From Lepidodermella squamata (taxonomy: Eukaryota; Animalia; Gastrotricha), in assembly GCA_047495785.1 (NCBI GenBank), contig JBLDXI010000001.1, positions 4,588,001-4,652,000 on the forward strand: a stretch of 64,000 nucleotides of DNA. The letters are read 5' to 3'. The notes beneath the pieces are model-generated. The model was given only the letters and a program-made list of their open reading frames with translations, was not told the origin of the DNA and searched no databases. Position numbers and translations under genes: made by a program. The stretch's first letter is position 1. The number at the start of each line of letters is the position of its first letter. Shown one piece after another: positions 11,927 to 60,355 of the stretch.

Positions 11927-12277
11927 TCACTGGCAGTTGTTATTCATGAAGTCAATTCGATTTTCCGGCTCCTCTTGGATGCATTTGCGAATTCGACCCT
12001 GTGAGTAGTCCGAGATGTAGAATGGCTTTCAAATGAGTTGGCTATATCATATGCTTACCGTGCTGTCGCAAGTTTCTCGACAGTCTGATTGTGTTAAATC
12101 GTCCAGCGCTGTGATTGCCATGAGCTCCAGCGCGGCTAGTTCAGCGTCGCTTAGCTCACTGATAGCTTTGATGAGCCTGTCTTGCCCAGCAATGCTGTCT
12201 TTGATAGGCTGGGGCAGAGTTCTTGCCACCAAAGCCGCGGCGAGTGCTGCAGGGATCAATAAGGCTATAGTGCACAT
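11927..12277 (-). CDS. Secreted 4-Cys family member A1; intron 12058-11999
   Basis: Signal peptide, acidic helix, then spliced CRETCDST|GRIRKCIQEEPENRIDFMNNNCQ*. TATA-like sequence near 12318. Confidence 0.85.
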
Positions 12278-12974
12278 GGTTTCAATATTTTAGAGATGCA
12301 CAGCTCAGGTCAGCATTATATATTAGGCTACCTGTCTTGAACTGGGTTGCTTAAGATAATTCAATTTCTAGTTTTTACGAAAACAGTATACGAGAATAGC
12401 AGTTCTATATTCCGGTGAGCAGACGGTTCTTCACCCACTAACTGCGCTAGATAATACTGTTATTAAGTTAAAACTTTCAGGGACGTGCAAGCAGTGACAG
12501 GCTGGGGCCTTGAGGCACATTATTTATCGTCCTCCAAGCGATTGGTGTCTAGGATCTGGAAATGGACACCTTGCCTCAACTCGCACAGTCAAGATATCGG
12601 GCTAAAGGTGGGTGCATGAGAAATCGACTGATATCTTACCTTATAAGGAAAACTTGGTGCCGCCTAGGGTCGTTGAGCGCTGAGAAAACAGGCAGTGAAG
12701 TTTCGCAAACGATCCAACAGCTGAACAATGTTTCGGATTTTAATGGCTAATTATGTACCCAGTGCATCATCAGAACCAGATGTTTGAAAAGCTATTTGTA
12801 AGACCTTTTCGGGTGATATCGGAGTATGCGTCCTCTTTATCATAGAACAACTACTCAACTACTTTTAGCATTCATTCTAATTTATTTTCACTGGAATACG
12901 GACATTAAAGTAAATTAATATAAGATGATTAGATGAATGTAGCGTCATTCGTCCAAGCATTCGTCATGCAATGT

Positions 12975-13330
12975 CTAGTTCGTAACTGCCTGAATACCGG
13001 AGTTACATCGTCTTTCGATATATCTTGAACGCTTTTCAGGAGATCTCTTGAGGCAGCGTCGAGTGTTCATCTGTAAATGCGGCGGGGGGTTAACAAGAAT
13101 TTGATTCGATTATTTGAACTTACTGCGTCTTTGCACCATGATTCGCACAATGTTTTAGTAACCTTGTCCAGCCCAGCAAAAGCTAATGCTTCGATTTCGG
13201 ATAGCTCGGCTTCGTTGAGAAATTCAAGGCCCTTGAGCATCCAATCTAACTCGGCGTCGAATCGATCCATCGGGGCTGTGAGACACGGAGCCATAATCAT
13301 AGCAATAAAAATAAAGAATTGAATATGCAT
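12975..13330 (-). CDS. Secreted 4-Cys family member A2; intron 13123-13071
   Basis: Signal peptide; spliced CESWCKDA|MNTRRCLKRSPEKRSRYIERRCNSGIQAVTN*. Confidence 0.85.
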
Positions 13331-13947
13331 TTTCGGGAATCGATTGAATTTCGGTTACATTCCGTCCCTTATATTGAGCATTGTCATGCACTGCTAACTC
13401 CCACTTCATAGACGACAGGATTTGTCACGCTGTAAATTTGTCGCAATGTAGCTCAGTTTGAAATAAATACTTGTCTGTAAATTATAACCTTCCAACGCAA
13501 TAGTTCAATATAGCCACGAGAGGACATGGGCGCTTTGAAGGTTTTAGGACTGTGGGTGCAAGTCTTTATATCGCAGACAATTAAATATCTGCCTCGGCGG
13601 GACGTTTCAGGTGTCTAGTTTCATTCAACAAAACATTATGAATCAAAGCTTTCCTACTATGTGTTGTCCTAGCAGCGTTTTTGCACCTATACAAAACAGC
13701 CAAACACTGTAATACGTAATTCGTTAATTGAGCGGCCCATAGTCCGATGTCCACGAGGCTTCATTTTGAGATATAAATCGTATAAATAATTTTATTTTCA
13801 AAAAGTTCAGCAAAACGTGTCACTGAGGCAAAACTAGGGGTTATCAACTACTGCGGATCGAATGGCACGGGCCAAATCGACCAATGTTGCATTGTTATCA
13901 GGACATGATAAATTGGAATTGTTCGTGCGTTTCTTGTATTCTGTGTA

Positions 13948-15688
13948 CCGTACTCCGGTACAATTTTGAACAGGTACTAATTTGAACACCACGCGCATCT
14001 CCCAAACTGTGAGGGTTGCGAACTTGCTGATTTTTCTGGGAATAGATCTCAATGAGTTATGTAGGTACGCAAACTTTCACCAACCCAGTCCTCACGGTTG
14101 ATTTTATAAAAAATCCCGAAAAAACCACGAAAATAGCAAACTTTGAAGCGTTGCCCTGCTTTTACGGAGGTAGCTACAGAGATGCGACAAGCGACAAAAA
14201 TGAAGTTTCTGATTAGTTAATGTTGCTCCCAAAAGCGCTCAAACTTCTATAGAGTGGTTATCGTGTGGCATGCATGCAAAGTTGAGAGGGTAGGCGGTAC
14301 AATTTTGAACAATTGTTGGTACAATTTTGAACAGCAGTACAATTTTGAACACCCATTTAGGAGGACTTTTCTGAATTTTAGCGCATGATAGAAACTTCTA
14401 ACTTTACTGTTCCAAGAAGCTAAAAAAAATTTTTGGGACAAGAGAACTTGAAAAATTGAACAAAAACAGAGCTTTGAAGTCATCTCCTAACGCCAAAGTG
14501 CTCTTTAGCGTATTAACTGCGAATGTGGGTTTCATGCATAATGTGGATTTATTTATTAAGAGCTGTAAAGTAAAACGTCGAATTTTAATCTTTCGAGAGC
14601 CGCTTCTTCTTAGCCGCAACTTCGGCGGCGATCCTAGCGGCCGCAGTCGAAATTCACTGTCGTGTCACTGTTTCCCCACTTGTATACGACTACTGGCGGC
14701 GCCGCATTTCCAGCCATGTCCCCGCCAAAAACCACAGTAACCATCGCCTTCTCAGAACCAGGCGCCATCTGCCTGACGTATTGGGCACCTCGACAAACCA
14801 AGACCTTCTATTTTGAGCCGAGGCCCAAAACAAAACCGCTCTCATCGAGATTTTTTATGTTTTTCGACGGAGTATCCGCAGGTATGGCTTCTTCAAGAAG
14901 CTTGAGCCAATCTTTAATGATTTCAGGTTTGCTGCGGTGGTACACGGCTTTGTTTGAAGGAGTTCTTAGGGACAAATTATTTCGCTCGACATAAGCATTA
15001 AACCAGTCATCACTCAATTTGGCGGATGCAATTTGAGAACCAATATCCATTATCTCGTCCTTAGTTAGTGGAATTGCCCAGCCTTGAGTAGCCCTAACGA
15101 GCCGTGTGATGTGCTGTTCTTCTTCTACTGACAAAGCTGTCGGATGACCAACGGTACCATCATGGGCCTGATGGACCCGATTGTGGAAGGTTCCAATCGA
15201 AATCCCCCATTTCTCGACGTGCTCGCGATAAACCATTCGAAACGACTTCATTCCAGATTTAACCATCATCACCGCTTCAGTCATGTCTTCGTCACTATAT
15301 AGCCTGGTTTTTTTCTTCGCCGTTCGAACCATTGGTGTAGCAAATTTGCAAGGATCGCAAAAAAATTCGCAGCAAGAGCGCCGATCATCGATTAAATAAA
15401 AATTTAAATTTGTTAGCGCGCAAATTTAGGTGGATTTTTATTTTTAATTTTGATGCTAAATTCTTAGTGTTCAAAATTGTACCTAGCTGTTCAAAATTGT
15501 ACTTTTGGGGTACCCCTTCCCGAATGCTAACGCAAGAGAATTTCGAAGATTTGAAAATACGGGGATGATCCTTGACCCAACCCCGATCAGGATACATCGA
15601 AAACCGCATGGAAAAAGCTTATTTAATGCGTACAGGGCAAATCGTAGTTTGCGTGGACGAGAGTGTTCAAAATTGTACCGGATTACGG
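13948..15688 (-). mobile_element. Internally deleted pogo-type (Tc1/mariner superfamily) DNA transposon
   Basis: 25-bp TIRs CCGTA(C/A)TCCGGTACAATTTTGAACA flanked by TA on both sides; subterminal GTACAATTTTGAAC repeats. Confidence 0.9.
14635..15332 (-). pseudogene. Defective pogo transposase (psq-type HTH, CENP-B-type HTH, start of DDE domain)
   Basis: YSDEDMTEAV...; NLDESGF first catalytic motif; in-frame TAG at 14808-14810, followed by KVLVCRG...VTVVFGGDMAGNAAPPVVVYK; the rest is missing. Confidence 0.85.
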
Positions 15689-15772
15689 TACTTAATATTC
15701 AGTTCACGAAAATCTGATCTTCAGGAAGAAGTTGATAGGAATCCAATAGATTCACCAGGCGTGTTAGAAACT

Positions 15773-18348
15773 CTATATACGCTCGCATAGGCCACGAGTA
15801 CTGCTACCGCAAGATGATCGTCGAAGTTTACCGATGAAAAGCACAGCGCCTAAATAGCAAAGTAAGAATAATCTGAACTCAGAACATTTGTTTGTCTCAC
15901 AGTGTTGGTAGTTAATTGCTCCGCCGACCAATTCGAACTGTGAGTTGTTGAATGGCTGGCCGGTTATCCAAGAGTAATCATCCAGATTGGTTCGTTTTGC
16001 CCCGATAAAGGCTTGGGCGGAGGGAAGATTTATCACCCTCACAGCAGCGTCGTATGTCGCTTGATCCTTGATTACGGCCAACGATTTTGCGCGATCTTGG
16101 CAATACTTCGCCATTTCATCTCTCGTGCCTATTGTATTTGAGATCTCCAAGTCACCCAATGTCTGGAAATAATTGATTTTTATCGCGAGATTAGCCAATG
16201 GTGTGAGCCAAAACTTACAGCGCCAGAGCACAAGCCATTCTTCAAGAAGGTACAAACCGTATCCCCGAACCCACTTGTAGTAGCAAGAATGCCTGTAAAT
16301 ATCGGAGACAATTGATGAATTGATAGAAAAAGAAAGAGAAAGAGCTTCTACAACCTAGAACTAACAAGTGCCTTTGTCAGATACTTTGTGTCCCATAAGT
16401 AACGCAAACAAAGAAAATACACGGAAAAGGGTTCAGAAACTCAGAAACTCAGAAAAATGAGATACGAAGTCACATCACATGGCAAGAAAAATTCAAAAAA
16501 TCTCGAGAATAGTAATAAAGTATTTCGTTTGTTAATTAAAAAGTCCGGAGAAATTTGGTTCCAGAGAAAATTACCAAACCAGTTACCATCGGGGTTTTTC
16601 GAGTTTTCTCTCCGGTCAATTTTTGGTTTCTTCGGTTAAACCGAAGATGGAATAAATGATGGAATATTCTCTCGGTAGGTTTAATTAAATTTGATGAAGT
16701 TCCTAAAAGAAAGTTGCTCAATTTAAAATAGTAGCGCAACTACTGCATTTTTCACAAATGTCACGAAGCACGAACTCACATTCACCAACACCTGCTGGGT
16801 ACGTCCTTTGCCAAAAAGGCGAGTCGATTTTGACAACGCTATTATCAGCGTCCCACCTGAAATCAGCCACCAACCCAACGAACGCTGAAGCAGCCGCACC
16901 CTTAGAATTCACAATATTTAAAGCCGCATCGAAATCAGCCGGCGTGGAAAAAGTTGCGAGACGGCCGCCGTCCTTCTTACAAGCCTCTAACTGCAGGCCG
17001 AAGACGCCATCTTCGAGCGAGGAGAAGAAATACTTAGGAGGTGGGGCCAGGTCTTTCAAGCAGGCCGCGTGATTATCGGCGAATTTCGTCGAGTTAGCAA
17101 ATATTTTGACCTGATTTAAAGAATATGGGATAACTATTTTTCAAAAACTATTCATCTACTTACCACAGTTGAACCGGATGGACAGTTGTTGTAACAGTTC
17201 TTACTGGTTGAATTATCGCATTGAACAGCATTCTGAGGGAAAATTGAAGAAAATCATAAATAGAATCAGTATTTCTTTTACTTTACTTACCCATGATAAG
17301 CAGTTGGCTTTGTTGCGGTAAACACCAGTCGAAAATGCACTCGTTTCATCAGCGGCGCAGCCAGTGCTGCTGAGCCTACAGCCGGTAAATTCACGAGTGA
17401 CGGCATTGAAACATCGAATGTGAGGCTTCATAGAATCAGCAGCGTCGCCTGCAAAGAATTAAGGAATAAATATGTTGACTTTAGACTTTAGAAAGCCGAA
17501 AAGGCCCCGGTTTTTGGAGTCTAAACTAAAAACTCACGGCTAAAATTCCGAAGGCATGTGTCCAAACTTGAGTAAATCGCGGGAGATTTCGTCTAAAATC
17601 CCAAAAATTGAAGGAAAAATCACAATGAAAATCTAAAGAAATTATTACACCGCTTGGACACTGGAAATCGCTAGGAACACAGGTAATTAATTGTTGAGCT
17701 GCATCTACACAAGCGCTAAATTTTCGATTCTGAAAAGACAATTTTCATAAATAACTACAACAATTAGACGTCGAATTACGCACCGTGAAAGAGTTGTAGT
17801 CAATAGCACAAGCTGCAAGATTTGCAATAAATGGGAATGCTCCATTGTAAGATCCACCGACCTTGAAAATTGGAGACAGATAAAGGACAAATATTTAAAA
17901 TTAAACTTAAAAATGACAATAAAAAAGAATTAGTCAAGTTTTTGAATATTGATACTTACCATGATTTCATTTGTTTTCTCACAACCAGGATTGCCCGGCC
18001 GGCATGTCGCTGCGTAAGTGGCATATTTGTAACACAATCTAGCAGTCTGTTAACAAGAAATTTCCAAAAACACAATAGTAACGGAATTGGGAAATCATAC
18101 CGCTTTCATACAAGACGACCGATCCGCCACAGCGGTTCCAACCTGTAACATTGAAAAGCATGAGAGAAAAAGTGTTATCCAGTGTTGAGCCTCACCTGAT
18201 ATTCTCGCAATCGAGGGCAACCGTTAGGTAATTCGCGGCAATCGGCGAACGTGTCGTCGAATTGCGAGAAGCAACGAGCCCAATCGCCGCAATGCACTAC
18301 GCCGCTGGCAGCAATCAACGCAGCCATAACCGTGATTAGCAATTTCAT
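15773..18348 (-). CDS. Secreted multi-exon protein: repeated Cys-rich N-terminal modules plus two C-type lectin-like domains
   Basis: Signal peptide MKLLITVMAALIAASGVVHC; about 11 GT-AG-bounded exons; CTLD motifs ACKKDGGRLATF..AFVGL..FRW and YCQDRAKSLAVIKD..AFIGAKR..YSW..C..LCE. Exon chain assembled by eye. Confidence 0.75.
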
Positions 18349-19749: not shown

Positions 19750-20170
19750 TCAACTTTGAATACGCTCGCATAGGCCGGCCATGGTGGTATCAGCGCAAGA
19801 CGCTCGCTGAAGCGAGCCCGAAGATAGAACCACGCCTGGAAAAATTAATTGATTAAATCATCATAAGAAATTTGTTTTCCTTCCTAACAGTGATTTTCAA
19901 ATGTTGGATCGCCATTCAAAGTGAACAGCGTGCCGTTGAAGGGGTTGCCTGTTATCCAAGAATACGAGACCAAGTCCCTCCTTTTCCCACCAATGAACGC
20001 TCGTCTTCCCGGAACAAATTGTTTAGCAGCTTCGAATGTCGCTTGGTCTTTGATTGTGGCCAACGTTTTCGCCTTGCCAGCACAATAACCTTCCAGGAGT
20101 CCAGGAGCTGGGGTGTCGCGACAACCCAGCACCCCTGTACTCGCACCCTGTTCGCTACTCTCCTCTGCCT
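19750..20170 (-). CDS. C-type lectin-like domain, partial paralog of the last CTLD of 15773-18348; 5' end unresolved (possible pseudogene)
   Basis: YCAGKAKTLATIKDQATF..AFIGGKR..YSWITGNPFN; same final intron position; ends MAGLCERIQS*. Confidence 0.65.
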
Positions 20171-21339: not shown

Positions 21340-22130
21340 TCAAGTTAACAAGCGAGCGACTGTGAAGAAAGTAATGAGAGAAGTGGCGCATAGGCTGTGT
21401 GAGATTGATCCAAATCGGCCGATAGCATCGTCTGGCGTATTCTCATCCGCCTCGTCCATCTCCTGCTGGCCAACCCCAGGACCCACAATGTCCGCTGCAC
21501 TATCGTTTTGCTCGTTCGACGTAATTTTGCCCTTATTGATAGTGCTGTCGTCCCCCCTTACGCGTTCTAGTCTTTCTTGGCGATCGAGGATATCCAATTC
21601 TCGCTAAAAATTCTACTTTAGAAATACGCACTTCATGTCATTGCAAATTAACTAACCTTGCTATTCATCTTCCGTGCTTTGTCCTCCCATTGCCGTTGTA
21701 GGATTTCACGCTGTAGCTGGTTGTTGTGCGCCGTTTCTTCCAGATTTTTATTAGCCTCGATGCTCATTTTTTGTAGCTGCGCGTCGTATTGCGCCTTCTC
21801 ACGCATGAGGTTACCATCATAAACTGCTTTCCATATTTCCAGTGCGACTGTAACGAAAATGATAAGCAGGGATATTAGAGCTCCATATAAGTAGGGTTCA
21901 TATTGCAGTGAGTCATAGTCGAGACTCTCCGTCGCATTGATGCTACTGCTCACATTGACCCGTTGTGAAATAGCGATAGCAGGCGGTTCAGTGCCGAGCC
22001 GAATTAGTGGACTCTCGCCAGAATGTTCGATTCGATTAATTGGCATAGCGCCTGCTGAGCGAAACTGCACGTTAAGCAGGGCAAACGACATTACCAAGCT
22101 GAAATAGCGCAGAAAATGATTCTTAGGCAT
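21340..22130 (-). CDS. Uncharacterised type I membrane protein with cytoplasmic coiled coil; 2 exons
   Basis: Signal-like N-terminus, TM YLYGALISLLIIFVTVAL, heptad-rich region. A short GT-AG intron (about 21656-21605) joins the two ORFs in frame. Confidence 0.6.
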
Positions 22131-22848: not shown

Positions 22849-23085
22849 ATGCCAATGAAACTCTCAGCCTCAGTTCTGGTCGTCATTTTCATGCTGATGC
22901 AAATATTCATGCTGCAACAAATTAATGGCAACCCTTCAATATGCATCAAGCAGAATGGCTCCTGCACTTCCTTCACCCAATGCTGCTCCCAGTTAGTTGA
23001 TATGCCTTAAAAGTATTCAGTATTTCATTTATTTCGATTTTCGATGTTATCCAGTGTCTGTGATGAACAGTTCAACTGCGACTGA
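22849..23085 (+). CDS. Knottin (ICK) peptide precursor K1; intron 22992-23054
   Basis: MPMKLSASVLVVIFMLMQIFMLQQING-NPSICIKQNGSCTSFTQCCSHVCDEQFNCD*. Absent from the ORF track because it is short and spliced. Confidence 0.88.
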
Positions 23086-24081: not shown

Positions 24082-24455
24082 ATGATCTCAGTTACCATAA
24101 TTTTTATCATAGCCCTTGCTTCAGGTGTTGCCTTATCTCGACCTTTCAAAAGTGATTTGGATGGCCAGATTTTGGAGCGAAAATTATTTCTGATGGCGCT
24201 GAATGTCTTCAATGACACCTCACCAATTGAACTTGGAGCCAGAGCTGTTGTAGTACTCGATAACTATACGCGGAGGCAATGCCGAATGATCTGCCGAAGA
24301 GTAGTAAGAAAATATCGAAACCAAACAGTTTTGCCAACTTTATATGTTTTTTTTGTTAGCATGTTCGAAGTTGCCTTCGTGAGAAACCCGATGTCCGGCC
24401 AAAGTTTATAGAAAAGAACTGTGCATATTCTAAGAGTCAAGAGTATGCTTTTTGA
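24082..24455 (+). CDS. Secreted 4-Cys family member A3; intron 24304-24359
   Basis: Signal peptide; spliced CRMICRRV|HVRSCLREKPDVRPKFIEKNCAYSKSQEYAF*. Confidence 0.85.
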
Positions 24456-24752: not shown

Positions 24753-25046
24753 TTAAGAGATTTTCTCCGTTCTTAAGAGAATAGAAAACAGAACGTTCCT
24801 TAGACAGCTGCTTCGAATTATTTTCAAGCGGCGAGCGACAGACGGCTGACCCAGGCACTGTAGCATCCGAAAGTGGAAGCCAGTGAAGCAGCGCACGCAC
24901 AGGTCACGTGAAATCTCGCCGATCCCAGTCACCGATTTCCGTAATTCTGACTCTGCAGAATGTTTCGACTGTGTTGAAGTAGTAGTGCACTGCATTACAA
25001 AGGAGAATATCAGTATTCCGTATAAGATGAATAGCGAATCTGACAT
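24753..25046 (-). CDS. Secreted intronless divergent 4-Cys protein B1
   Basis: Signal peptide; CVRC-x10-CLGQPSVARRLKIIRSSC; close paralog at 35516-35812. Confidence 0.8.
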   Translation of the reverse strand: MSDSLFILYGILIFSFVMQCTTTSTQSKHSAESELRKSVTGIGEISRDLCVRCFTGFHFRMLQCLGQPSVARRLKIIRSSCLRNVLFSILLRTEKIS

Positions 25047-27063: not shown

Positions 27064-28410
27064 ATGTCGCCTGGAGTGATCAACTTTCCGCAAATCGCTT
27101 TTCTCACTCTGCTATATCTGCTGCAAGCCTTTCTGTTGTCGAGCGTTTACAGCAATCCTTCAATTTGCATCAAGCAGAATGGCTATTGCACTTCCTTCAC
27201 GCAATGCTGCTCAAAGTTAGTTCATAGATGTTGAAAAGATGTTGAAAAGTTACAACAGGAGCTTCAGTACGACATTGATCAATTGAGTGTCTGGCTCGCA
27301 GCGAACAGTCTAATGGTAAACGGGAAAAAATCGCAGATGATTGTTTTGCCAACCGACTACAACACCACTTCCCCACCTAAATTCGAAATCAAAATTGACG
27401 GCTGCTTGATCGGAACAACGTCATCACTCAAAGTCTTGGGGTTTACTCTTGACAATAAATTGGGATTTAAGGAACATTTAAGGGGGGTGAAAAACAAATC
27501 ACGTAGTGGCTTATTCGGACTGAGGATCGCTGCTAAATACCTTGATCGAAAGACTCTCAAACTCATGGCAAATGGCCTAATATTCTGCCACTTAATGTAC
27601 TGCGATACAACTCTCTCGCAGCTGGCACCGACCAAGCTCAGCAAACTACAACGTCGCCAAGACCAGGCCGTAAGAATCATTTGCCACGCTCCGATGAACG
27701 CGGACCCCGCACCGCTAAGACAAAAACTCGGATGGCTGGATCTTGACGGAAAACGAAAAGTTCACCTGGCAACACTGATCTGGCGCTGCATTAATGGTGA
27801 GGCCCCGGTAGCCATAGCCAACTTCTTCAAACTTCGAACCGCACCAATGGCTTCTACCCGCAAACAAAACGCCCTCAAAGAACTCTCAAACATCCTAGAG
27901 GTGCCCAGGACTAAGTCAGCGATCATGGATCGGTGTTTGGCTCACCATGGATCGGTATTTTGGAACTCTCTCCCCGACCACATCCGCACATCCAAAACTG
28001 CCGACCAATGCAGAAACTTGGTTTACCGTCACCTGCTTACACAACAAAAAGAACTTACCTCAAATACCGCCGCCTGAAACCAGAAGACAAGAGCATCTGC
28101 ATTTTATATTTTTATATTGATCCTGCTACAAACCAACATTCATCACAATTGTTTTCTTTGTTGAGCTATCTTCTTTTTTATACATATAAGTTACATGATG
28201 TTTTATAACTATCTAATCTTGTGTACAGTTTAAATCGAACCTAACTAATCCATTGTCTTTTTTTACAGCTGAGCTTTCCAACTTTTTCTAAAAACGGATG
28301 AATGGCTCATAAATAAATAAATAAATAAATCATAAATTAAAAAGGCATTCAATCAATTATAGGATTCCATGTTTTTCAGCGTTTGTGACGACTCGTTCTA
28401 TTGTAACTGA
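27064..28410 (+). CDS. Knottin (ICK) peptide precursor K2; intron 27216-28379 enlarged by a LINE insertion
   Basis: MSPGVINFPQIAFLTLLYLLQAFLLSSVYS-NPSICIKQNGYCTSFTQCCSNVCDDSFYCN*; both splice sites are intact. Confidence 0.85.
27227..28329 (+). mobile_element. 5'-truncated non-LTR retrotransposon (CR1/L2-like), RT C-terminal part, 3'UTR and (TAAA)n tail
   Basis: ORF 27283-28077 (WLAANSLMVNGKKSQM, LKVLGFTLDNKLGF, FWNSLPDHIR); tail at 28311-28329; TCATA duplicated at 27222-27226 and 28330-28334. Confidence 0.92.
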
Positions 28411-42129: not shown

Positions 42130-42654
42130 TCACTGGTATCCGCAGCTTACTGTCAGGTACTTCATTCTACTGCCTGGCTTCTTCTTGAGGCAAGTTAGCT
42201 TTTTGACCTGAAAATTGTGTTGCAAATCTTTTTGAAACAATTTTTTTTTGAAAGAGCTTACCGCAGATTTGCATACTTTCCGACACTTTTTCGCGGTCAA
42301 TTTTGTCATAGCTGCAAGCACCTTTGCCTTTGACTCAGCGATTTCGGCATCGCTTAGAAATGCGAAATTTCGATCGTTGGGTTTAAAACCAAAGCTGTCG
42401 ACAGGCAGGACTTCGCCCGGAACCGGGTTTAATTCGAAGGAATCGAGTCTCCCTACACAAGGCGCATTAAGGTAGCTCAAGGAAGCCTGACTTGCTTCGG
42501 CTTTGTAAGTCGAGCACTGTTTAAGAGCATGAAATATTGTATCACTGAGCCGGGCGTTGTTGATTGAGCCACGAGCCCGGCAACTAGCCATGGTAGCAAT
42601 GCCGAGAACTAAGAATATTGATATCATAGGATATAGGATCCACTCGGACTGCAT
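42130..42654 (-). CDS. Secreted 4-Cys family, long form C2; in-frame 54-nt intron 42261-42208
   Basis: CRKVCKSA|VKKLTCLKKKPGSRMKYLTVSCGYQ*. Confidence 0.87.
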   Translation of the reverse strand: MQSEWILYPMISIFLVLGIATMASCRARGSINNARLSDTIFHALKQCSTYKAEASQASLSYLNAPCVGRLDSFELNPVPGEVLPVDSFGFKPNDRNFAFLSDAEIAESKAKVLAAMTKLTAKKCRKVCKSAVSSFKKKLFQKDLQHNFQVKKLTCLKKKPGSRMKYLTVSCGYQ

Positions 42655-44418: not shown

Positions 44419-44912
44419 TCATCGGTGTCCGCAGCTTATTGCCAGGTACTTCATTCTGCTACCAGGCTTCTTCTGAAGGCAACTGCGCTTTTTGGCCTGA
44501 AAATTGTGTTGCAATTTAACTGAAAATAAATAATACAAGAGCATACCGCAGATTTGCAAAGCTTCTGACACTGCGATGCGGTCAATTTATCTATAGCTGC
44601 AACCGCCATTGCCTTTGAATCTGCGATTGCGGCGTCGCTTAGAAATGCCAAATTTCGATCGCTGGGTTTAAAACCAAAGCTGTCGACCTGAGGGAATTCG
44701 CCGTGAACCGGGATCAATTCGGAGGACTCAACTCTCCCAAGACAAGGCGCGTTAACGTAGCTCGAGGAAGATTGACTTGCATCGACATGGTGATTCGAGC
44801 ACTGCTTAAGAGCCTGAAATATTGTATCACTGAGCCGGGCATTGTTCATTGAGTTATAAGGCCAGCAACCAGCCATGCTAGCAATGCTGAGAACTAAGAA
44901 TATCGCTCTCAT
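44419..44912 (-). CDS. Secreted 4-Cys family, long form C3; intron 44546-44497
   Basis: CQKLCKSA|AKKRSCLQKKPGSRMKYLAISCGHR*. Confidence 0.87.
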
Positions 44913-45277: not shown

Positions 45278-45445
45278 GACTTTTCTACGCTCATGAAGGC
45301 CTAAGAGATGAAGTCGAGCGGCCAACCGTGGCTGCAAGTGGCTTCTGTGATACAGCGTTAGAAAAACCAACCTAGCGGCAAAAACAACGGGCACGGTCGC
45401 ATTGTTGTCGCCGATTCATTCGATGTGATTGATATTCCTAAGTGA
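45278..45445 (+). pseudogene. Pseudogene remnant of the F family (F4)
   Basis: Translates DFSTLMKA*EMKSSGQPWLQVASVIQR*KNQPSGKNNGHGRIVVADSFDVIDIPK*; two premature stops and no 5' half. Confidence 0.8.
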
Positions 45446-45850: not shown

Positions 45851-48815
45851 TCACTCCATCGCTGAGGACGGCGAAAATCGCAGTCTGATGTGGTTTACTG
45901 TATTAGCCTCGACGGTCGCAGCTACTGATGAATCATTCTGGCTTACTATGGCAAGCGGCATCATCACAGCAGTAGAATGACAGCCTCTCCTCATCTGAGA
46001 CTTGAACTCTGCCTCATCTCTGGTCGTTCTCACGCGCAATTCCATCGTCAGAACAATGAGCGAGATACAAGCAAGAGCTAGCGAAACACCCGATACGGTC
46101 AGCATAAGATGGTGGGCGTTCGTAGACTGAACTACGACAACAAGCATCGACCCGCCGAGAAGAGCCGTCATTTCGCAATAGATCACGATCCCAGTTAATG
46201 AGTAGCGCAGAGTACGTTGCGACTTTTTCACGATCTGGTGAGAATAATATCGAATTTCAGTCATTCAGTCACATCTTCGCCCATACTTACCTGGAAAATT
46301 TGTTGCACTGATCTAATTGTAGCAATACCTATTAGCGCCTGAAGCAAGATGAGCTGAAAAAACGACAGAATTGCAGATGAGTCGTCGAGGTTCAGTCGAC
46401 AGTAGAACTTTGTTTCAAGGTAAACAAGATCAGGGTCGATATCCGAAGCTCTCTTTCCAGTAACAATGTCCGTGAAATCAACCATAGGAAGCAGCGAGCC
46501 GAGAAGAGGCGAACTGCCAGCTACCCATAGTACAGTCATCAAGATCTGCTTCAAATAGTGCACGCGCATGAGTTTTCTTCGTTTCTTCTTAGCGTTGAAT
46601 AGTGTTGATCGCATCTTTATGAAGTTCCCCGCCATTAGCGAGCAAATTCCAGCAAATACTAGGGTTCCAAAAACGTGGCAGGTTACCAATGGTTGGAAAT
46701 TGTTCGAAACCGGTAACACATAGCTTTGAATGAATAGAAGTACAGTGCCTATTAATGGTGAACGATTTTCGGCGATTATTTCCGCTTCGTTCGTAGTTGG
46801 ATCGAGGTCTTTCGGCAGAATTAGAGCTAGTAGCGGAGCTGGCGGGAACATCATTAACAGAGATGCGAAAATTCCTATCGTTCCAATTGCTTTAAATTTG
46901 CAAAAAATTAGTTGTGTTATTTGTTTCAAACATCTTCATTACCTGCCAGTACTCCATAAATTATTGGTGGAATAAGGGGTGCGACCAGTTTTTTATACGT
47001 GAAAGAATCCGCAAATGGTTTACCATTGCGCCGCCACGCTACAGCACTAGCGAAAATCTCTGGTGGCTTGTTACCATGAGAATCGTAGACCGCAACCGTT
47101 TTAGATTTGAAACTACTCGCGCCATATTTTTGCATCTGTTTCAAAACCACCGGTGAAAAGCCAAGAGTATCCCGCTTTGTCTCGGAGCTGAACAGATGAG
47201 TACCGAGGAGACCCCTAACCGTAGGCATGGAAAACAGAGCTTCGTCCATTGCAGCTTTGAAAATGTCAGTATTTTCGACGTTCAACTCAGAAGTCCAATT
47301 TTCTAGGCTTTTAATTCCTACGATTTGGCTCACTCGCTCCAACCACATTCCGACGAATAGAGTTTGATCGTACATATTACTGGAAAACATTTGAGGATAC
47401 TGAATCCCTGTTACTTTACTGAGAATTGAAGACTTGAATGCAGAATAGGTTAACCCAGTTGAATCGGTGGAAGTGATGTTGACATCTTCCATCGTCCCGT
47501 CTCCAAAATAGAAAACACTCTGGACCATACCAGCTAAATCTTCACAGCTACAAGACGTCATACCAGGGTAGCAATTCTTCGGATGTGTACTGTCTTCGTA
47601 GACATTTGAAGCGAAAAATGCGTAATGGGCCTCGGAAAAGCCGTGTTGGTATAAACTGCAGAGAAGCAACGCGACCGAGTCTGAAATAAAGTAGATGATA
47701 CGGGCACCACTCGCTTTAATAAGTTCTACAGCTCGATTGATCTCTTCCAAGTTGTCAAGCTGCATCATCTCGGCAACTGCGACAACTTGAATGCGGCGTT
47801 GGTCTAGCTGGCGGATGAGATCGCGAACTGTATAGTAATAGCTGATGCTGCTGATGATAGCAACTTTCCGCCAATGCCACTGCTGTGGAAAATCGGCTAA
47901 TGCTGTGTAGAAGCTATCACGGGTTGGGGAGATTGGGTAGGTATTTGGATAGAGTATGCTATTAGCAACCACTTCAACACTGCATGTGAAAGCGAAAGTC
48001 TGAAAATTGATCGAAAGTGAAATAGGAAAGTAAACAATCATCACCGATTAGTGCGCGAATCACCAGGAGAAATGGGGATTTCGTACCTAACATTTCGCAA
48101 GGCCAAGGTAGGAAACCCCAAATAAAACCACAGGGGGACCCTTTGGTCATATAATGTGGGTCCCTACATCGAAGATCCTACTTCGCGCAATGTCAGCGCT
48201 CCTATAGAATATTTTGCTCATCTGATGATGAAATAAATTCAGAAGATATCTGACGTATACTTACCGAAATCAGACCCAAAGGCTTTGCAGCAAGCGAAAA
48301 TATGCGTTGGATAGCTTCCAAGCAAGGCGACAACAAAATAATCGGGAGTCTAGGAGCTCGGCCACCCTCTTTCATCGTACCGAACAAACCCTTGAAGGAT
48401 AGACCATCCAAGCTCTGAAAATGGCTTGACGTTCTCATCTAAAGTCTCATCTAAACTCTCTTACCTTGTCGTCAATCATTTCGAAAACAATCTCGTACTT
48501 CTTAGTGAAATTCACCACAAATTGTAACCGGTCGAGAGCCATTTGTATTGCACGGGTCGTAGATGGGCCCATCAAGCTTCGTTCGAATCTATCCGAGTAG
48601 CAAACTGACGTGAGGATTGCTAGCACGATTTTATCATCAGAGGATTTGTCAAAGAAGTCTGATGATGCGACGTAGTTAGGCATCGGCTCGTCGACACTTG
48701 ATTTTTCATAATAGAAAGATCTGTTCTTCACACTGCTACGGAAGTTTTTAACATTAATCGCGCTTGTAGTTATAACAAGGCAAGCATTAACAGCTGCAAA
48801 TGTTATTGAGCCCAT
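45851..48815 (-). CDS. Divergent class C GPCR-like receptor (Venus-flytrap/ANF-receptor ectodomain plus multi-TM region); multi-exon
   Basis: Signal peptide; AIQMALDRL; QWHWRKVAIISS; ELIKASGARIIYF; MYDQTLFV; followed by several hydrophobic helices in ORFs 46261-46929 and 45851-46264. Confidence 0.7.
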
Positions 48816-50677: not shown

Positions 50678-51054
50678 TTAGTTTAGCTTCTTCCTACCAA
50701 TGCGACAGTCGGCCTCAATGAAGTCAATCCGATGTAGCGATTTGCTTTTCAAGCACGTTCGTAGTTTCTCCTTGAATAAAAGGAAGTTAAAGTTGAAGCA
50801 TGGACTAGCAGTGCAAAACCTACTTTCCCCTTGCAAGCTTTGCGGCACGTCAGGCGAGTGAGCTGGTCCAAAGCTTTAGTGGCCATAGCTTCCACTTCCA
50901 TCAGCTCATCGTCGCTGATACTGGTCAATGCATTGAGAAAAGCGTCGCGGCTCATCGTAGTTTCACTGTCAGGCCAATCAGAAGGCATGGAAAAGGTCTG
51001 AGCTATCAGAGCTGCAGAAATGACCAACGGAAATAGTATCGATATCCAACGCAT
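50678..51054 (-). CDS. Secreted 4-Cys family member D1; intron 50823-50771
   Basis: CRKACKGK|EKLRTCLKSKSLHRIDFIEADCRIGRKKLN*; TATATA near 51103. Confidence 0.85.
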
Positions 51055-52455: not shown

Positions 52456-52956
52456 TTATTTATTTATTTATTTTTATTTAAGAGCCATTCATCCGTTTTT
52501 GGAAAAAGTTGGAAAGCTCAGCTGTAAAAAAAGATAATGGATTAGTTAGGGTTTGATCAAGCTGTACACAAAATTAGGTAGTTATAAAACATCGTGTAAC
52601 TTATATGTCTAAAAAAGAAAAAAGCTCAGTTTAACAACAAAGAAAACAATGTTAGTTTGTACGATCAATATAAAAATATAACAATTAAGATGCTTGTCTT
52701 CAGGTTTCCGGCTACGGTACAAGAGTTAAGTTCTTTTTGTTGTGTTAGCAGGTGACGGTAAACCAAGTTTCTGCATTGGTCGGCAGTTTTGGATGTGCGG
52801 ATGTGGTCGGGGAGAGAATTCCAAAATACCGATCCATGGTCGCTGACTTGGTCCTGGGCACCTCCAGGATGTTTGAGAGTGCTTTCAGGGCGTTTTGCTT
52901 ACGGGTAGAAGCCATTGGTGCGGTTCGGAGTTTGAAGAAGTTGGCTATGGCTACCG
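52456..52956 (-). mobile_element. Second, shorter 5'-truncated copy of the same LINE
   Basis: Reverse complement matches about 27805-28329, including VAIANFFKLRTAPMASTRKQNALK, the 3'UTR and the (TAAA)n tail. Confidence 0.92.
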
Positions 52957-53881
52957 TCATGTTCTCTATTGAACATAGAGTACAACAGCCTATTAGACCG
53001 CTCGTCTATTGGTAACAATTTAAAATTTAACTTTACAAAGTCAGTTTTGGCATGAGACGTACAAAGGACGCCGCGGCTTCGAAGCTTCCATTACATGCGC
53101 GATGCAGTGTAAAGATGTGTTGATCTCGTTGATCTTAAGCAACAAATAAGCTCAAGATATTTTAAGATGAGTGCAAAAAGTGTAATGAGATGATTCATTG
53201 GTCGAGCTGGAACTTTGGACCTCATTGAAAACACGCCTTTCTGATTTTCTGCAAGCGGCGGCATCTTATATTACGCCTCATGAGTTTTGGGGGCGAACCC
53301 AGCTTAGTATATATTCTTGTCCTACCTAATTTGTTAGCCTTCTGCGAACGATCGTTTTAGTGAATAAGTTGAGCATTCCGAGATATGTTCCCGGTTGATC
53401 GAGCCATCGGCCATCGGTATAGGGTTTTAAAATAAAAAATACATGGCCCGCTAATGCTCTCTGCGCCCGAAGGTATAGGTATATGAACTACGCAGAATTC
53501 GCCAATCCTTTCTCAGCGATAGAGAAAATTACTTCTGTGGGAGAACTTGTTACGCTCGGAACATTTTTAATGGAATATTGAGAGACTTTTCAAAGCATTA
53601 CCAGTTTAAATGTTCTGGTGGAACTTGTGGAAATGGGAAGCTATAGCTCTGATTTCACAAGGCATGCGAAAATTCAAGTAGGTCCCAATTTTTTAATATC
53701 AGCACAAATTTTATTTAGATGTATTACGATGATGCATACGACAAGGTGATACTCCATTACAATTGAGATATCAGTGTAAGTATACTAATGTACAGTAATA
53801 ATTACATATATTAAGTTCAGTGCTTGTTAGAGGAACGCAAGCTTTGTAGTTTGAGGCCAAGCCCAGCTCATCGGTTGACTG

Positions 53882-54257
53882 TTAGTTTAACCTATTCCTT
53901 CCGGAGCTACAACGAGTCCCAATGAAGTCAGGTCGATGCAGTGGTTTCTTTTTCAAGCATCTTCGAATTTTCTGCTAAAATCAAAGCTCAATAAAGAAAA
54001 TGTTCAGAGACTAACAAGGCGAAACTAACCATCCGCTTACAAACAGTGAAACACATTGAGCGAGTGAGCTGATCCAAAGCTTTAGTGGCCATAGCTTCCA
54101 CTTCCATCAGCTCATCATCAGTGAGGCTATGCAGTGCGGTGGGATAAGCGTCGAGGATCATCGCAGTTTCACTGTCAGGCCAAAAGGGCAGCGAAAAGGT
54201 CCGAACCACCAGAGAAGCAAAAATGACCAATGGGAAAAGTATCATAATCCAGCGCAT
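53882..54257 (-). CDS. Secreted 4-Cys family member D2; intron 54029-53975
   Basis: CFTVCKRM|QKIRRCLKKKPLHRPDFIGTRCSSGRNRLN*; shares DDELMEVEAMATKALDQLTR with D1. Confidence 0.85.
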
Positions 54258-55290: not shown

Positions 55291-55640
55291 ATGAGCGCAG
55301 AGTTTACGATAACTTTGATTTGGAATGTTGCAATGGCATCAGGGCTCGCACGCGGCGACATCGATGCTTTCGAGCGTGAACTTCGCTACTTGCAGTTGAA
55401 TTTCGAGTCTTTAGGTGAAGCTCAGATCGACGGCTTGGTATCAGTGGCTTTTCAAGGTCTGGAGATGGTTATTCGTGCTCGGGGGTCTAGCTGGGCACCT
55501 CGGTGACGTCAAGGTCAAGGACTACACCTGAAACCCTAAGCTGACAAAATTATCAGACCATTGTGACGCCGAAATTGCGTCTCATGAAAAATCTGAAAAT
55601 TAAAACTCGTCGTTCTTGCAGCAAAATCGGCTAATTTTTT
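55291..55640 (+). pseudogene. Degenerate 4-Cys family member E1
   Basis: Signal-like start and LGEAQIDGLVSVAFQGLE (compare A2 LNEAELSEIEALAFAGLD). Cys region broken by stops and frameshifts (RNCVS*, EKSEN*). Confidence 0.55.
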
Positions 55641-57719: not shown

Positions 57720-58012
57720 AACGAGTAAATTGAAAATAGGGCCGATATAGGACGCTCCCATGCACTTGCCGAGATCAGACCATGAGCATATCACTTATCA
57801 CTGCCGCATCTTGGCGTCGTCTGTCGTGGCTCCATTCATCTCCAAACCTTGAAGGGCTGCAGCAAGCCGTCACGTTGAGTCTCATTCAACGAATCCAAGT
57901 TCAAAATTAGAGATCGGAGCTCCCGCTCGAAACCATTGATGTTGCTTGGCGTCAGGCCTGAGGCTACGGCGACAATTAAAATTAAAGATATGAAATAGTC
58001 TGAATCGCTCAT
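57720..58012 (-). pseudogene. Frameshifted 4-Cys family member E2 (paralog of E1)
   Basis: MSDSDYFISLILIVAVASGLTPSNINGFERELRSLILNLDSLNETQRDGL, then a frameshift into ALQGLEM; matches E1 (FERELR, QGLEM). Confidence 0.65.
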
Positions 58013-58690
58013 TTCAATAAAATTGAATAAAATCGCTCATTCAGTATGACACTTTTGGATTTCAAATTATGATAATAGAACATCTTATACCTTGTAATGG
58101 ACCTATAGATGGACAACTGAACTGAGGTTCCATTGCATCAACCCTAATTAAATGTAATAGGGTCTTTTCCCCTCAGTTTTAGAGATATTATTTTACTGAG
58201 ACGTGCTAAAAATAATTTTTCGAAAATGAGAACGGCGCTGCGCTACTGGCCCTAAAGTCCTGCTCCTTGCATAAAACCTGGAAAATTTCCCATGTACACA
58301 GTGTAGAATAACTCGGATTTAGGCTTGTTTATGTCACTTTTTAGGTGATAGGCGACGAGTAAAAAGTTGCCTTTCTGCGTGATAAAGAGGCAAAAGCAAA
58401 TGACTTTTCGCTCATGTCACCTTTCACTGCGAAACCTACATACAAGCCTAAAAGCGAATATCTCAACGACGCTAACGATAGCTATAGTTAGGAAACCAAC
58501 AGGATCCCAGGCTGAAAAAATCGGTATAAATTTAAATAAGGTGAGCCATGTTGGACGACTGGGAATGGCGAAGGCTATTAGTGGTCACTGTTTGCTAGTA
58601 ATTTTGTGGGCTATGGAGTGGCAGAGAAGGCTATAACTATTGTTATCCTAATATATTCTGTTGCTGTAGCAACGGAAGACTTTTTGAATA

Positions 58691-59036
58691 CCGTACTGCC
58701 CGGAACAAAAACCATGACATTTGTTTTTTTTCAAACGCTGATGAACCCCTGACATTTATTTATTCGAACCAACTAGTAACTTGCCTGGGTACCAAAATGG
58801 CATATATTTTCCTGAGATCCTGCGTATTTTGACCCAAAAAATTGGTCACTGACCTTTCTATAATCCAAGAGTAGAAATTATCTCCATTCAGAATGGCTAT
58901 AATGACCTTATTAGTGATCTTCAGTATAGTCCCTGCAGTTGACCTGACATTTATTTCGGGCTTGACATTTATTATTTCGAACGACCTCTAACCTCTGGCA
59001 TTTATTTGAGGCTGGCTTTTTTTTCGAGCAGTACGG
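58691..59036. mobile_element. MITE with pogo-type ends and TA duplication
   Basis: TA|CCGTACTGCCCGGAAC ... TTTTCGAGCAGTACGG|TA; internal TGACATTTATT repeats. Confidence 0.75.
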
Positions 59037-59941
59037 TAGCCTGCGAGGCCATTCATGCGGACAGTAGGCAAAAATACGTCGGTCTGGCAACCAAAATTAC
59101 ACACAAACTACGAATCAGCTACGAACCATTCGAGAAGGCGTAGATGGAATATTAAATAGAATTGGCGTAGAATTAAATGAAATCTGCCAAGTTTCAATAA
59201 TTCAAACCGGCTAATCATGGGCGTGAAAGCCCAAGCATGAATTAGGTTCCCCAAGTTGTACGGTACTGAGTTTTCTCAATACTGATTTTACAAGAATATT
59301 TCACGAGATAATTGAAGATAATTGTATGATAATTGAATCACTGGCTTGCTAAAATGCGCTATTTTCAGCCAACGTGAACATTCCATGAAAGATGGCCGCG
59401 ATAACAATGGCTAACGTATAATTTCATCATCCCTGCCTGTTCCATCGGTTATACTTCGATATATGCTTCAGCTAAATAGTAGAGCTTTTCGGCGTGCGTC
59501 GATTGGTCAATCGATCGTTGCTATGACCGACGCTGTTAATCAGCAAGTATTTATTATCCCATATAGGCAGCGGCAGCAGACCGAGTATTACACAAATTAG
59601 CGACTGATTCCTTTATAAATTTAATTAGCGTTGCTCCGAATTCCCGTGAACGTTTGTCGCCTTAATGCAATATCCGTGTTCGTAATTTGGGCCGCGTTTG
59701 ATGGAAGTGCTTTGATCAGTTTCCTGCCACGAGGTACTAATCGGATGTTTTGTCTCAGTCTTTCAGTAATTGGAAGTCGTCTCGATTTATTGTTGTTAAA
59801 TATGCTCATTTTGATCATCATTAATTAAGAGTTCGCCATCACGTAATACCTAATCGATGTCCGCATAATACGAAACGATAACGAATCGAAAAGCTTTTTA
59901 CTAATCAGAATTTTCGAATTTTCAAGGCACGGAAATTTTCC

Positions 59942-60355
59942 TCATTTAGGAAGATCTGTGACATCGAAAGAATCAGTAACAACTATGCGACTGTGTCGGC
60001 CACCTTTGCCGCGCTGATGTTTCTTCGCCTTCCTTGAAGCTACTCCTGTTAGCCACTGTTGACCATTTGATGCTTGTGGACCAGCCCTATTGAACTGTTC
60101 CAGGTCTGCGACGAGTTTCGTTCGAATTGCTCTGCTAATAGAGGAGAGCTTACTTAGCATTGCTGCAGCGTGGCTGTAAGAACCAGGCATTGAACTAGTG
60201 TGATCAGTTGTTGAAATGAGTTCTTCATGTTCAGCTGCTGTTGTCTCGCTGTTCAGATCGTAAAGAAATCCCAGTGCTGCACCGGATAGCGGAAGCCAGG
60301 TAGAAGTGAGAAGGAAAACAATTATCATTATTTCGAATATTATTTTCGATTGCAT
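59942..60355 (-). CDS. Secreted linear-peptide precursor F3
   Basis: Signal peptide, GFLYDLNSE, QQWL, basic cluster, SRIVVTDSFDVTDLPK*; TATATA about 40 bp upstream of the ATG. Confidence 0.85.
   Translation of the reverse strand: MQSKIIFEIMIIVFLLTSTWLPLSGAALGFLYDLNSETTAAEHEELISTTDHTSSMPGSYSHAAAMLSKLSSISRAIRTKLVADLEQFNRAGPQASNGQQWLTGVASRKAKKHQRGKGGRHSRIVVTDSFDVTDLPK

Follow-up and report, generated by a model that had tools for sequence, protein, structure and literature searches.

The nlp-29/cnc genes of C. elegans, the arminins and periculins of Hydra and the Bomanin genes of Drosophila are clustered in tandem and encode taxon-restricted peptides with antimicrobial or effector roles. In nemertean mucus, knottins occur alongside helical disulfide peptides and cytolysins that are likewise helical (PMC5864730), and the paper on the nemertides reported no homologues outside Heteronemertea. 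For gastrotrichs, no paper on secreted peptides, immunity or chemical ecology was found in the literature searched.

Here, we describe an island of genes in the gastrotrich Lepidodermella squamata that resembles the nlp-29/cnc, arminin/periculin and Bomanin clusters in several respects. Its genes encode short secreted peptides, contain zero or one short intron, and form both-strand tandem arrays that mix related families, with TATA-type promoters and a lineage-restricted distribution. In contrast to those clusters, with which they share no sequence kinship, the gastrotrich knottins and some of the helical peptides are not cationic. The genes are real, of the secreted-peptide type and taxon-restricted, and the role that we propose for them is a prediction.

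Gene families of the island

The families were mapped by tblastn of ORF products against a 64,000-nucleotide stretch of contig C1 (the window), together with splice modelling. We examined a genome of 151 contigs totalling 121.2 Mb, which fits the L. squamata assembly as published (122 Mb, 157 contigs, 43% GC; PMC11660948). Four knottins, nine genes of a two-exon, four-cysteine helical family (HEL) and three genes of a cysteine-free family (LIN) are intact in the window, along with five HEL-related or decayed loci and two broken LIN loci, and 19 ORFs are intact with their splice sites kept. The genes are spread over both strands, so that the interleaving described in the sequence-only reading was borne out by the modelled coordinates, as were tandem duplication, conservation of the cysteine scaffolds with greater variation in the loops, and occasional pseudogenes. 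The 48-kb extent given there was too small: the island spans approximately 88 kb, of which the left 48 kb lie in the window and the remainder runs beyond the window end. The single short intron attributed to most of its genes is present in the knottins and HEL genes but not in the LIN and X genes, which are intronless, and in one knottin it has grown to 1164 nt.

All four knottins that had been counted were recovered by tblastn and splice modelling at the coordinates expected. They lie on the + strand and share a C-C-CC-C-C framework and a phase-2 intron. In each spliced model, the signal peptide is followed by a peptide of about 30 residues with the spacing C-x6-C-x5-CC-x3-C-x5-C, a cysteine pattern by which we assigned them to the inhibitor cystine knot class, in which disulfides I-IV, II-V and III-VI would form the knot. 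The first gene (22849-23085) consists of exon 1 at 22849-22991, a 63-nt intron and exon 2 at 23055-23085, with a TATA box at -95. In the second (27064-28410; exons 27064-27215 and 28380-28410), the ORF is unbroken, the intron has been expanded by a LINE reverse-transcriptase fragment (ORF 27283-28077) and is 1164 nt long, and the start codon region is present in one chimeric, low-depth cDNA contig. The third (29953-30189; exons 29953-30104 and 30159-30189, intron 54 nt) has TATA at -96 and AATAAA at +68. The fourth, an expressed gene (31180-31640), has its CDS at 31286-31437 and 31492-31522, an intron at 31438-31491, TATA at 31182 and AATAAA near 31613. In cDNA contigs, its transcription start at 31214 is abutted by the SMART template-switch oligo and follows the TATA box by approximately 30 nt, and its 54-nt GT..AG intron is spliced out at a joint (31437>31492) covered to a depth of 143.6. 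Thus, knottin 31286 is transcribed and spliced as modelled, in line with the spliced transcripts anticipated for the locus.

HEL genes encode a signal peptide and an acidic amphipathic helix ending in CxxxC, followed by a phase-0 intron and the loop RxC[LI]xxKPxxRxxFIxxxC. The position and phase of the intron are conserved across 22 HEL models, and in the nine intact window genes it measures 50-60 nt and falls 2-4 codons past CxxxC. Paralogs end in TGA or TAA stops at homologous positions. On the - strand, subfamily A is represented at 11927-12277 (exon 1 12059-12277, intron 60 nt, exon 2 11927-11998 with a TGA stop), by a gene whose closest paralogs are on contig C20, and subfamily C at 12975-13330 (exon 1 13124-13330, intron 53 nt, exon 2 12975-13070). 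Two subfamily E genes lie on the + strand, at 24082-24455 (exon 1 ending at 24300 or 24303, exon 2 24360-24455) and 34514-34944 (exon 1 34514-34735, intron 56 nt, exon 2 34792-34944). Three long genes follow on the - strand: a subfamily D gene with an N-domain and a HEL domain at 39955-40455 (exon 1 40090-40455, intron 51 nt, exon 2 39955-40038), one at 42130-42627 (exon 1 42262-42627, exon 2 42130-42207) whose 54-nt intron is in frame and free of stops, and one at 44419-44912 (exon 1 44547-44912, intron 50 nt, exon 2 44419-44496). The subfamily B genes, also on the - strand, are at 50678-51054 (exon 1 50824-51054, intron 53 nt, exon 2 50678-50770) and 53882-54257 (exon 1 54030-54257, intron 55 nt, exon 2 53882-53974).

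The sequence-only reading had counted 14 loci of this family. Nine are intact HEL genes, and the figure of 14 requires the inclusion of two X genes, one N-domain-only gene and two Cys-less D relics, all of which fall within the HEL family or at its edge and may be HEL-derived forms. The X genes are intronless, lie on the - strand at 24753-25046 and 35516-35812, convergent with HEL 24082 and HEL 34514, respectively, and differ from HEL in cysteine spacing (C-x2-C-x10-C-x15-C for the four cysteines of the first). The N-domain-only gene (32046-32324, - strand) matches the two-cysteine domain at the N-terminus of long HEL genes, and its paralogs at L001:6757-7050 and L009:6876-7202 are conserved. 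One D locus (55291-55506, + strand), possibly a relic, is related to HEL exon 1, lacks cysteines and has a weak signal peptide; the other (57860-58030, - strand) is a frameshifted exon 1 pseudogene. The division of the island into three unrelated families therefore stood only in part, since these additional forms attach to HEL, and HEL and LIN may or may not be kin.

LIN genes are intronless and encode cysteine-free helical products. Where four linear-family loci had been reported, we found three intact genes, at 33154-33534 (+, 126 aa), 37147-37515 (+, 122 aa) and 59942-60355 (-, 137 aa from the ATG at 60355), and two pseudogene fragments, one at 30498-30650 (+) that retains the N-terminal motif FGFLTDLNSE and lacks a signal peptide, and a C-terminal one at 45278-45442 (+) with one TAG and one TAA in frame.

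Other genes are present in and near the island. The secreted lectins proposed within it contain C-type lectin domains according to Pfam (Lectin_C, E=1.1e-5 and E=0.006; - strand ORFs 15773-16255, 16718-17059 and 19884-20132); they fall outside the peptide families. A PPP1R3-like CBM21 gene (38353-38814, -; CBM_21, E=2.3e-19) and a class C GPCR-like gene (45851-48815, -; ANF_receptor, E=9.4e-11, followed by hydrophobic ORFs) are likewise unrelated to the families. For the paralogs at 1949-3016 and 6185-6955, previously read as pore-former-like, Pfam and PDB gave that reading no support.

Promoters and expression

Every intact model begins with a hydrophobic core (10-residue Kyte-Doolittle mean at least 2.47), and the signal peptides ascribed to the intact genes are thus upheld by signal-peptide-like N-termini, as judged by this heuristic rather than by SignalP. 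The abundance of TATA boxes was also confirmed. A strict TATAWAW was found upstream of 8 of 21 loci, as compared to 7% of background windows, and 22 of 38 family genes have the relaxed TATWWAW at -130 to -20, as compared to 10.6% of background. A TGACAG-like motif occurs across families upstream of 21 of 38 genes against a background of 17% that did not consist of promoters of unrelated genes, and the paralogous promoters are not independent.

Expression was assessed in one set of whole-animal cDNA contigs. Within a single 6-kb stretch, depth was approximately 145 for knottin 31286, 7-10 for HEL 34514 (exon 2 and 3' region) and 3-6 for N-only 32046 (3' part), and these contigs gave no depth for LIN 33154 or X 35516. 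Neighbouring genes thus differ at least 15-fold. That most neighbours of the expressed knottin have little or no cDNA in this one RNA data set weighs against an effector role for the peptides. Silence or very low expression of most members is also what stage-limited structural or reproductive secretions would produce, whether for cuticle or scales, egg shell, adhesive tubes or the post-parthenogenic sexual phase. The lectin genes within the island, the purifying selection and the age of the paralogs described below are compatible with such secretions. We nevertheless consider them improbable, because the mature peptides have only 30-130 aa and contain neither repeats nor low-complexity cross-linking regions, and scaffolds of the knottin type are typically those of ligands, inhibitors and toxins that are soluble.

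Comparison with known peptides

Word-indexed and exhaustive HMM searches, Pfam, PDB and metagenome scans revealed no relatives outside this genome. The best PDB match of a knottin was nemertide alpha-1 (6ENA; E=0.49, 14.3 bits), which is not significant. Like the alpha-nemertides, which are knottin toxins from the epidermal mucus of heteronemerteans, the gastrotrich knottins have six cysteines in the order C-C-CC-C-C with identical loop lengths of 6-5-0-3-5, and knottin 31286 shares the start 'CIA' with nemertide alpha-1. This loop spacing is that of a nemertean toxin that acts potently on sodium channels. Both groups of peptides come from soft-bodied spiralians, secretion in the gastrotrich being predicted from the signal peptides. 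Unlike the alpha-nemertides, the gastrotrich knottins are slightly anionic (net charge -2 to -3), end one residue past the last cysteine and lack the cationic, proline-rich nemertide tail.

Knottin 29953 gave a match to Pfam Conotoxin (PF02950; E=0.085, 14.2 bits) that spans the mature-toxin positions and falls below the 25.1-bit cut-off. O-superfamily conotoxins share with the gastrotrich knottins the cysteine framework and a precursor with a signal peptide. However, the gastrotrich precursors have no long pro-region, and the conotoxin pattern of conservation is reversed, in that the mature part is conserved and the signal peptide diverges.

No sequence match to HEL was found in PDB. Structure prediction on HEL 42130 read through its in-frame intron, a sequence that also served as reference elsewhere in the analysis, returned the helix ending in CxxxC with confidence (pLDDT above 87) and no fold for the second half. 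This predicted helix and the two further cysteines recall the CS-alpha/alpha toxins (CxxxC...CxxxC), such as nemertean neurotoxin B-IV and the beta-nemertides, but the second HEL cysteine pair is 15-16 residues apart over a proline-containing loop and does not form CxxxC. Many HEL products combine an acidic N-terminal half with a strongly basic C-terminal half, with mature net charges of up to +13, while others reach -6; no cleavage site lies between the two halves. The anionic knottins are unlike typical antimicrobial peptides, which, like the HEL peptides of -6, also speaks against effectors.

Selection, recurrence and possible roles

Pairwise dN/dS ranged from 0.18 to 0.66 across all families, and the genes are thus constrained and coding. 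The duplicates are old, with dS from 0.3 to above 1. That most of the island is debris left by birth-and-death evolution, with few functional members remaining, is very unlikely. The two LIN fragments, the two D relics, the LINE within a knottin intron and the several members without cDNA support would agree with such decay, but the 19 intact ORFs and a dN/dS below 1 throughout, despite such dS values, do not.

Among the knottins, pairwise omega was 0.06-0.17 for the mature peptide and 0.25-1.1 for the signal peptide, and pN was below pS even in the variable loops 1 and 4. These values give no support to arms-race evolution. Strong purifying selection on mature peptides and old duplicates, being unlike an arms race, also count against the effector reading.

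HEL, LIN and X genes occur in tandem arrays (more than 25, about 10 and 8 loci, respectively) and cluster together again at 4.652-4.688 Mb on C1, at 1.954-1.969 Mb on C20 and at 0.65-0.68 and 1.006-1.027 Mb on C4. This recurrence indicates that their co-location is not due to chance. Five of six HEL subfamilies span at least two clusters. The subfamilies predate dispersal to C20 and C4, and the mixed cluster is old, blocks of it having been duplicated or scattered to two or more further contigs. The recurrent, tandem mix of secreted, cysteine-rich families, together with the possible common upstream motif and the nemertean mucus precedent (PMC5864730), might point to a venom or single-gland secretome locus in which co-expression by a single secretory cell type accounts for the grouping of the families, as the sequence-only reading had suggested. 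Block duplication of an ancient cluster suffices to explain the recurrence without co-expression, and adjacent genes that differ at least 15-fold in cDNA depth do not favour expression in one shared cell type. No finding points to venom in particular: the mature knottin evolves more slowly than its signal peptide, there is no diversifying selection, and to our knowledge gastrotrichs have no venom apparatus. We regard a venom or gland locus as quite improbable.

The main rival to an effector role is that the peptides are signalling peptides or prohormones, akin to neuropeptides, hormones or pheromones, that are cut at basic sites. LIN precursors would then free a C-terminal 14-mer, and HEL precursors a disulfide-closed C-terminal loop peptide. 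Consistent with this, the conserved LIN C-terminal 14-mer 'IVVTGSFDV.DIPK' is directly preceded by an RxxR/K site in 4 of 6 members, a basic residue stands 1-2 positions ahead of the third cysteine in nearly all HEL genes, and KPxxRxxFI is kept across ancient HEL paralogs. These conserved KPxxR loop residues suggest a specific binding partner, so that signalling fits them equally well, and the purifying selection on the mature parts and the low or absent cDNA of most members also agree with it. However, tandem arrays of this size are unusual for neuropeptides, the expressed knottin is abundant in whole animals, the conserved LIN and HEL peptides show neither a C-terminal Gly-basic amidation motif nor repeated peptide copies, and no similarity to bilaterian neuropeptide families was found in Pfam or large protein libraries. 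On balance, signalling seems unlikely, if well worth keeping in view.

Tentatively, we prefer the view that the peptides are effectors from epithelia of the body surface or gut, with a candidate role in defence or in conditioning of the surface, and rate it at slightly less than an even chance. Epithelial secretory cells would export the peptides, which would then act outside the cell to protect or condition the body surface or the gut and would not serve as injected venom. In this they would resemble the peptide-rich mucus of nemerteans or the products of antimicrobial peptide gene clusters in nematodes and Hydra. Defence is suggested because the best PDB match of the knottin is a mucus toxin with identical loop lengths, and because many HEL peptides pair an acidic with a basic half.

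The locus yields approximately 20 gene models, most of them intact, and for one of these the promoter and intron are mapped. The results also show that ORF-based annotation of the L. squamata genome overlooks small two-exon peptide genes. Three families, namely a 30-residue knottin, a new four-cysteine helical scaffold and a linear family, could be made by synthesis or recombinant expression, and the repeated co-location of HEL, LIN and X is a case in which long-term linkage of distinct secreted-peptide families can be tested. A bolder and rather doubtful proposal is that HEL, X and LIN form one conserved gastrotrich-specific extracellular system whose linkage at three or more loci has long been maintained by selection, beyond duplication history. 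If so, HEL would be a previously undescribed disulfide-stapled helical fold, and the island would encode either ligands with their partner peptides or a surface or mucus arsenal that evolved in parallel to the nemertean triad of knottins, helical peptides and cytolysins.

Gene structures and transcripts

The window is animal DNA with a GC content of about 42%, and tblastn of small ORF products against it recovered several paralogous groups. The four knottin copies proposed in the sequence-only reading are all present, and their exons, read from the DNA, are intact in 4/4. Exon 1 encodes a signal peptide and the pattern CxxxxxxCTSFTQCCS; a phase 2 intron of 54-63 nt with a GTTAGT donor separates it from exon 2, which encodes xVCxxxFxCx and ends in a stop codon. 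For knottin 27064 (genes are named by one of their end coordinates), exon 2 lies at 28380-28410 and the intron holds a LINE reverse-transcriptase fragment. This non-LTR retrotransposon fragment (27216-28379, with an RT-like ORF at 27283-28077) is inserted in the sense orientation and enlarged the intron from ~54 nt to 1164 nt, leaving the coding exons unbroken. A second copy of the 3' part of the same element is found at 52745-53015.

For the 4-Cys helical family (HEL), a systematic search of donors and acceptors gave one consistent splice model for nine genes in the window and 13 elsewhere in the genome. HEL exon 1 encodes a signal peptide followed by an acidic amphipathic helix, (L)sDAELAELEAxAxxALDxLTxxxCxxxC. 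The phase-0 intron of 50-60 nt begins 2-4 codons past the second cysteine, and exon 2 has the pattern xxxRxC[LI]xxKPxxRxxFIxxxC.... In three of the window genes (40455, 42627 and 44912) the product begins with an additional 2-Cys domain, and this domain also stands alone as a conserved short gene at 32046-32324 (the N-only gene), with paralogs in two genome pieces beyond the window (L001 and L009). Two Cys-less loci, 55291 and 57860, are relics of HEL exon 1, one of them frameshifted. A set of intronless genes with four cysteines spaced C-x2-C-x10-C-x15-C, here termed X, is represented at 24753-25046 and 35516-35812, each tail-to-tail with a HEL gene of subfamily E. The cysteine-free family (LIN) consists of single-exon genes. 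In their products the signal peptide is followed by [FL]G[FL]LxD[LM]NSE, and a helical middle part leads into a highly basic stretch; 4/6 members have an RxxR/K site followed by IVVTGSFDV.DIPK, and broken LIN fragments occur at 30498 and 45278.

Every intact model begins with a hydrophobic N-terminal core typical of signal peptides, as scored by a heuristic measure. Altered decoding of UGA was considered for these genes and rejected: the paralogs terminate at homologous positions whether the stop is TGA or TAA, so the gene models are unaffected by this idea, and the sequence past the TGA diverges, with no conservation between knottin paralogs.

Contigs from a public run of 2015 matched the window at an identity of 99% or more, and because some of them terminate in the oligo used for SMART template switching and PCR, the run is cDNA. 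At knottin 31286, the oligo adjoins position 31214, ~30 nt 3' of the TATA box, and 31437 is joined to 31492 in a contig of depth 143.6, skipping 54 nt with GT..AG ends. The skipped segment is exactly the predicted intron, which bears out the short-intron splice model for this gene. Elsewhere in this 6-kb stretch, low-depth contigs covered HEL 34514 (depth 7-10) and the N-only gene (depth 3-6), in each case over the 3' part. LIN 33154 and X 35516 had zero contig coverage, a result that cannot prove silence. These data show that transcript abundance differs greatly between close neighbors. The start of knottin 27064 was found on one chimeric contig of depth 1. Several low-depth cDNA contigs at 31638-32158 contain joints between opposite strands, and in one contig the start of knottin 27064, reverse-complemented, is fused to its own exon 1; such joints look artefactual rather than biological, as if hairpins or chimeras had arisen in the SMART library or when the contigs were built.

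Extent and recurrence of the mixed array

The sequence-only reading had described a 48-kb island starting at 11927. Its left edge was upheld, as no family members were found to the left of this position in the adjoining genome piece that was searched (L012). The proposed length was too short: the window occupies 4,588,001-4,652,000 of contig C1, and the array, ~88 kb in all, runs past its end to ~4,687,500 on the same contig (L001-L004) and ends before 4,692,000. Genome-wide, we counted ~10 LIN loci, at least 25 HEL loci and eight X loci. A whole-genome search showed that the knottin subfamily comprises these four copies only, and a pair of more distant knottins is found 32.7 kb beyond the window end (L004:2685-3554).

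The same mixture, in which LIN and X accompany several HEL subfamilies, is seen again on two other contigs of the assembly, at 1.954-1.969 Mb of C20 and at 0.65-0.68 and 1.006-1.027 Mb of C4. A single lone LIN gene is present on C7. On C24, X genes only were found, in a separate cluster of four at G000:C24:1,250,000-1,267,500 (L013-L015) and without HEL or LIN neighbors; thus, X also occurs outside mixed clusters. A maximum-likelihood tree of 22 HEL domains resolved six subfamilies, 5/6 of which span at least two genomic clusters, and the cluster labels were no more clumped on this tree than shuffled ones (10 changes versus a shuffled mean of 11.7). HEL therefore diversified before any copying or dispersal of the clusters, each of which inherited a mixture. 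Block duplication of an old mixed cluster explains the recurrent co-location, and this account neither requires nor excludes selection for linkage.

Several other ORFs lie in or next to the array. A polycystin-2-like channel is encoded by a single 621-codon ORF just left of it (9198-11063, plus strand; PKD_channel E=2e-65, with Polycystin_dom and EF-hand matches). Two paralogous ORFs of 355 and 256 aa (1949-3016 and 6185-6955, minus strand) have coiled-coil-like stretches and a hydrophobic segment. They had been called pore-former-like; their Pfam matches were sub-threshold, the best PDB match had E=0.93 and no family could be assigned. Between HEL 13067 and the lectin ORFs, a 174-aa ORF (14808-15332, minus strand) resembles a transposase or HTH-type DNA-binding N-terminus with weak Pfam matches, and may be the remnant of a transposon. 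No family match was obtained for a 160-aa ORF (21648-22130, minus strand) situated between the lectin ORFs and the first knottin; its N-terminus is signal-like, and it has a single transmembrane-like segment and ends in a coiled coil. Arthropod and nematode cuticle markers were not found in the genome, a result of little weight since the controls were likewise undetected.

Relatives of the peptide families

Pfam gave no family match for any of the peptide families, the match of the knottin to Conotoxin being sub-threshold. The best PDB match of the knottin was nemertide alpha-1, from bootlace-worm mucus, which has identical loop lengths but scored only E=0.49. A word index of 5.8 billion proteins queried with LIN, long HEL and knottin exon 1 returned no match, nor did PDB sequence searches with HEL and X, and scans of JGI metagenomes with the LIN (A5) and HEL-E (A6) profiles found no relative. 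Exact-sequence contig look-ups, from which the window's own genome records were possibly left out, were also without a match. For HEL we used profile A4, two earlier alignments (A1 and A2) having been discarded because exon-2 fragments or the second cysteine were misplaced in their columns. An exhaustive HMM search of 1.84 billion representatives with A4 returned only P0001, which we rejected as a relative: it is a 499-aa tandem-repeat artefact whose score sums seven weak stretches. Within the reach of these searches, then, relatives of the families were not detected beyond this genome, in collections that hold few gastrotrichs and possibly omit this genome itself.

AlphaFold predicted LIN to be made of helices only, at low confidence (pLDDT 58, pTM 0.23). 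In the ESM Atlas, LIN had a weak link (score 0.85, 131 shared features) to the BPI/JHBP clan of lipid-binding proteins, a link that this all-helical model does not support. For HEL, the first helix was predicted confidently and the half encoded by exon 2 scored below 55, partly because the input was the sole stop-free read-through (42130), which includes 18 intron-coded residues. X matched only unnamed bacterial clusters in the ESM Atlas.

Profile-profile comparison of HEL with LIN gave E=0.016-0.019, with alignments lying over either the signal peptide or the region of the FLSD motif; for HEL and X, E was 0.01-0.03 across 15-16 residues. Each match beat 60 column shuffles, a weak test since shuffling destroys the signal peptide. 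X is possibly a distant relative of HEL; homology of HEL with LIN or with X is unproven by these profile matches.

Selection, promoters and function

Pairwise Nei-Gojobori estimates of dN/dS were 0.18-0.66 in all families, with dS ranging from 0.2 to >1. Values this low at such divergence indicate that the open frames were maintained by selection across old duplications, and decay of the array is, in our view, very improbable. Constraint on the mature knottin is strong (omega 0.06-0.17), the signal peptide drifts, and the variable loops 1 and 4 have pN < pS. The venom reading therefore fails in its testable features; the duplicates are also old, and gastrotrichs are not known to have a venom apparatus. 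This leaves a large and ancient array that combines several families of secreted peptides restricted to the lineage.

We examined the upstream 250 nt of 38 family genes from the window and L001-L011. A TATA-like box was present 34-104 nt 5' of the ATG in 22/38, compared to 10.6% of random windows, and at -91 to -104 in all four knottins. In an unbiased k-mer count, the top enriched hexamer was CTGACA/TGTCAG (14/38 versus 7.6%, Bonferroni-corrected p 6.6e-4). Sites resembling TGACAG/CTGACA, which we take to be of the TALE-homeodomain type, were found in 21/38 promoters versus 17% of random background windows, and occur across HEL, X, N-only, knottin and LIN promoters. This enrichment, measured against random windows and among paralogous promoters that are not independent, hints at shared regulation. 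That all of these peptides come from a single gland is quite improbable.

We tentatively favor the reading that the products would act as extracellular effector peptides from epithelial secretory cells, in defence or surface conditioning, because the genes are short, TATA-driven, tandem and taxon-restricted, many HEL products are acidic and then basic in layout, and a knottin scaffold is present. Signalling peptides are an unlikely and still serious rival, one that fits the purifying selection as well as the conservation of the loop motif and of the basic sites. Stage-specific structural or reproductive secretions are an improbable reading.

The four knottins are new peptides of a kind already known. 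HEL, X and LIN are, as judged from sequence, new families without known relatives. That they cluster together repeatedly adds something new, if modest, to a known theme, that of taxon-restricted clusters of secreted peptides.
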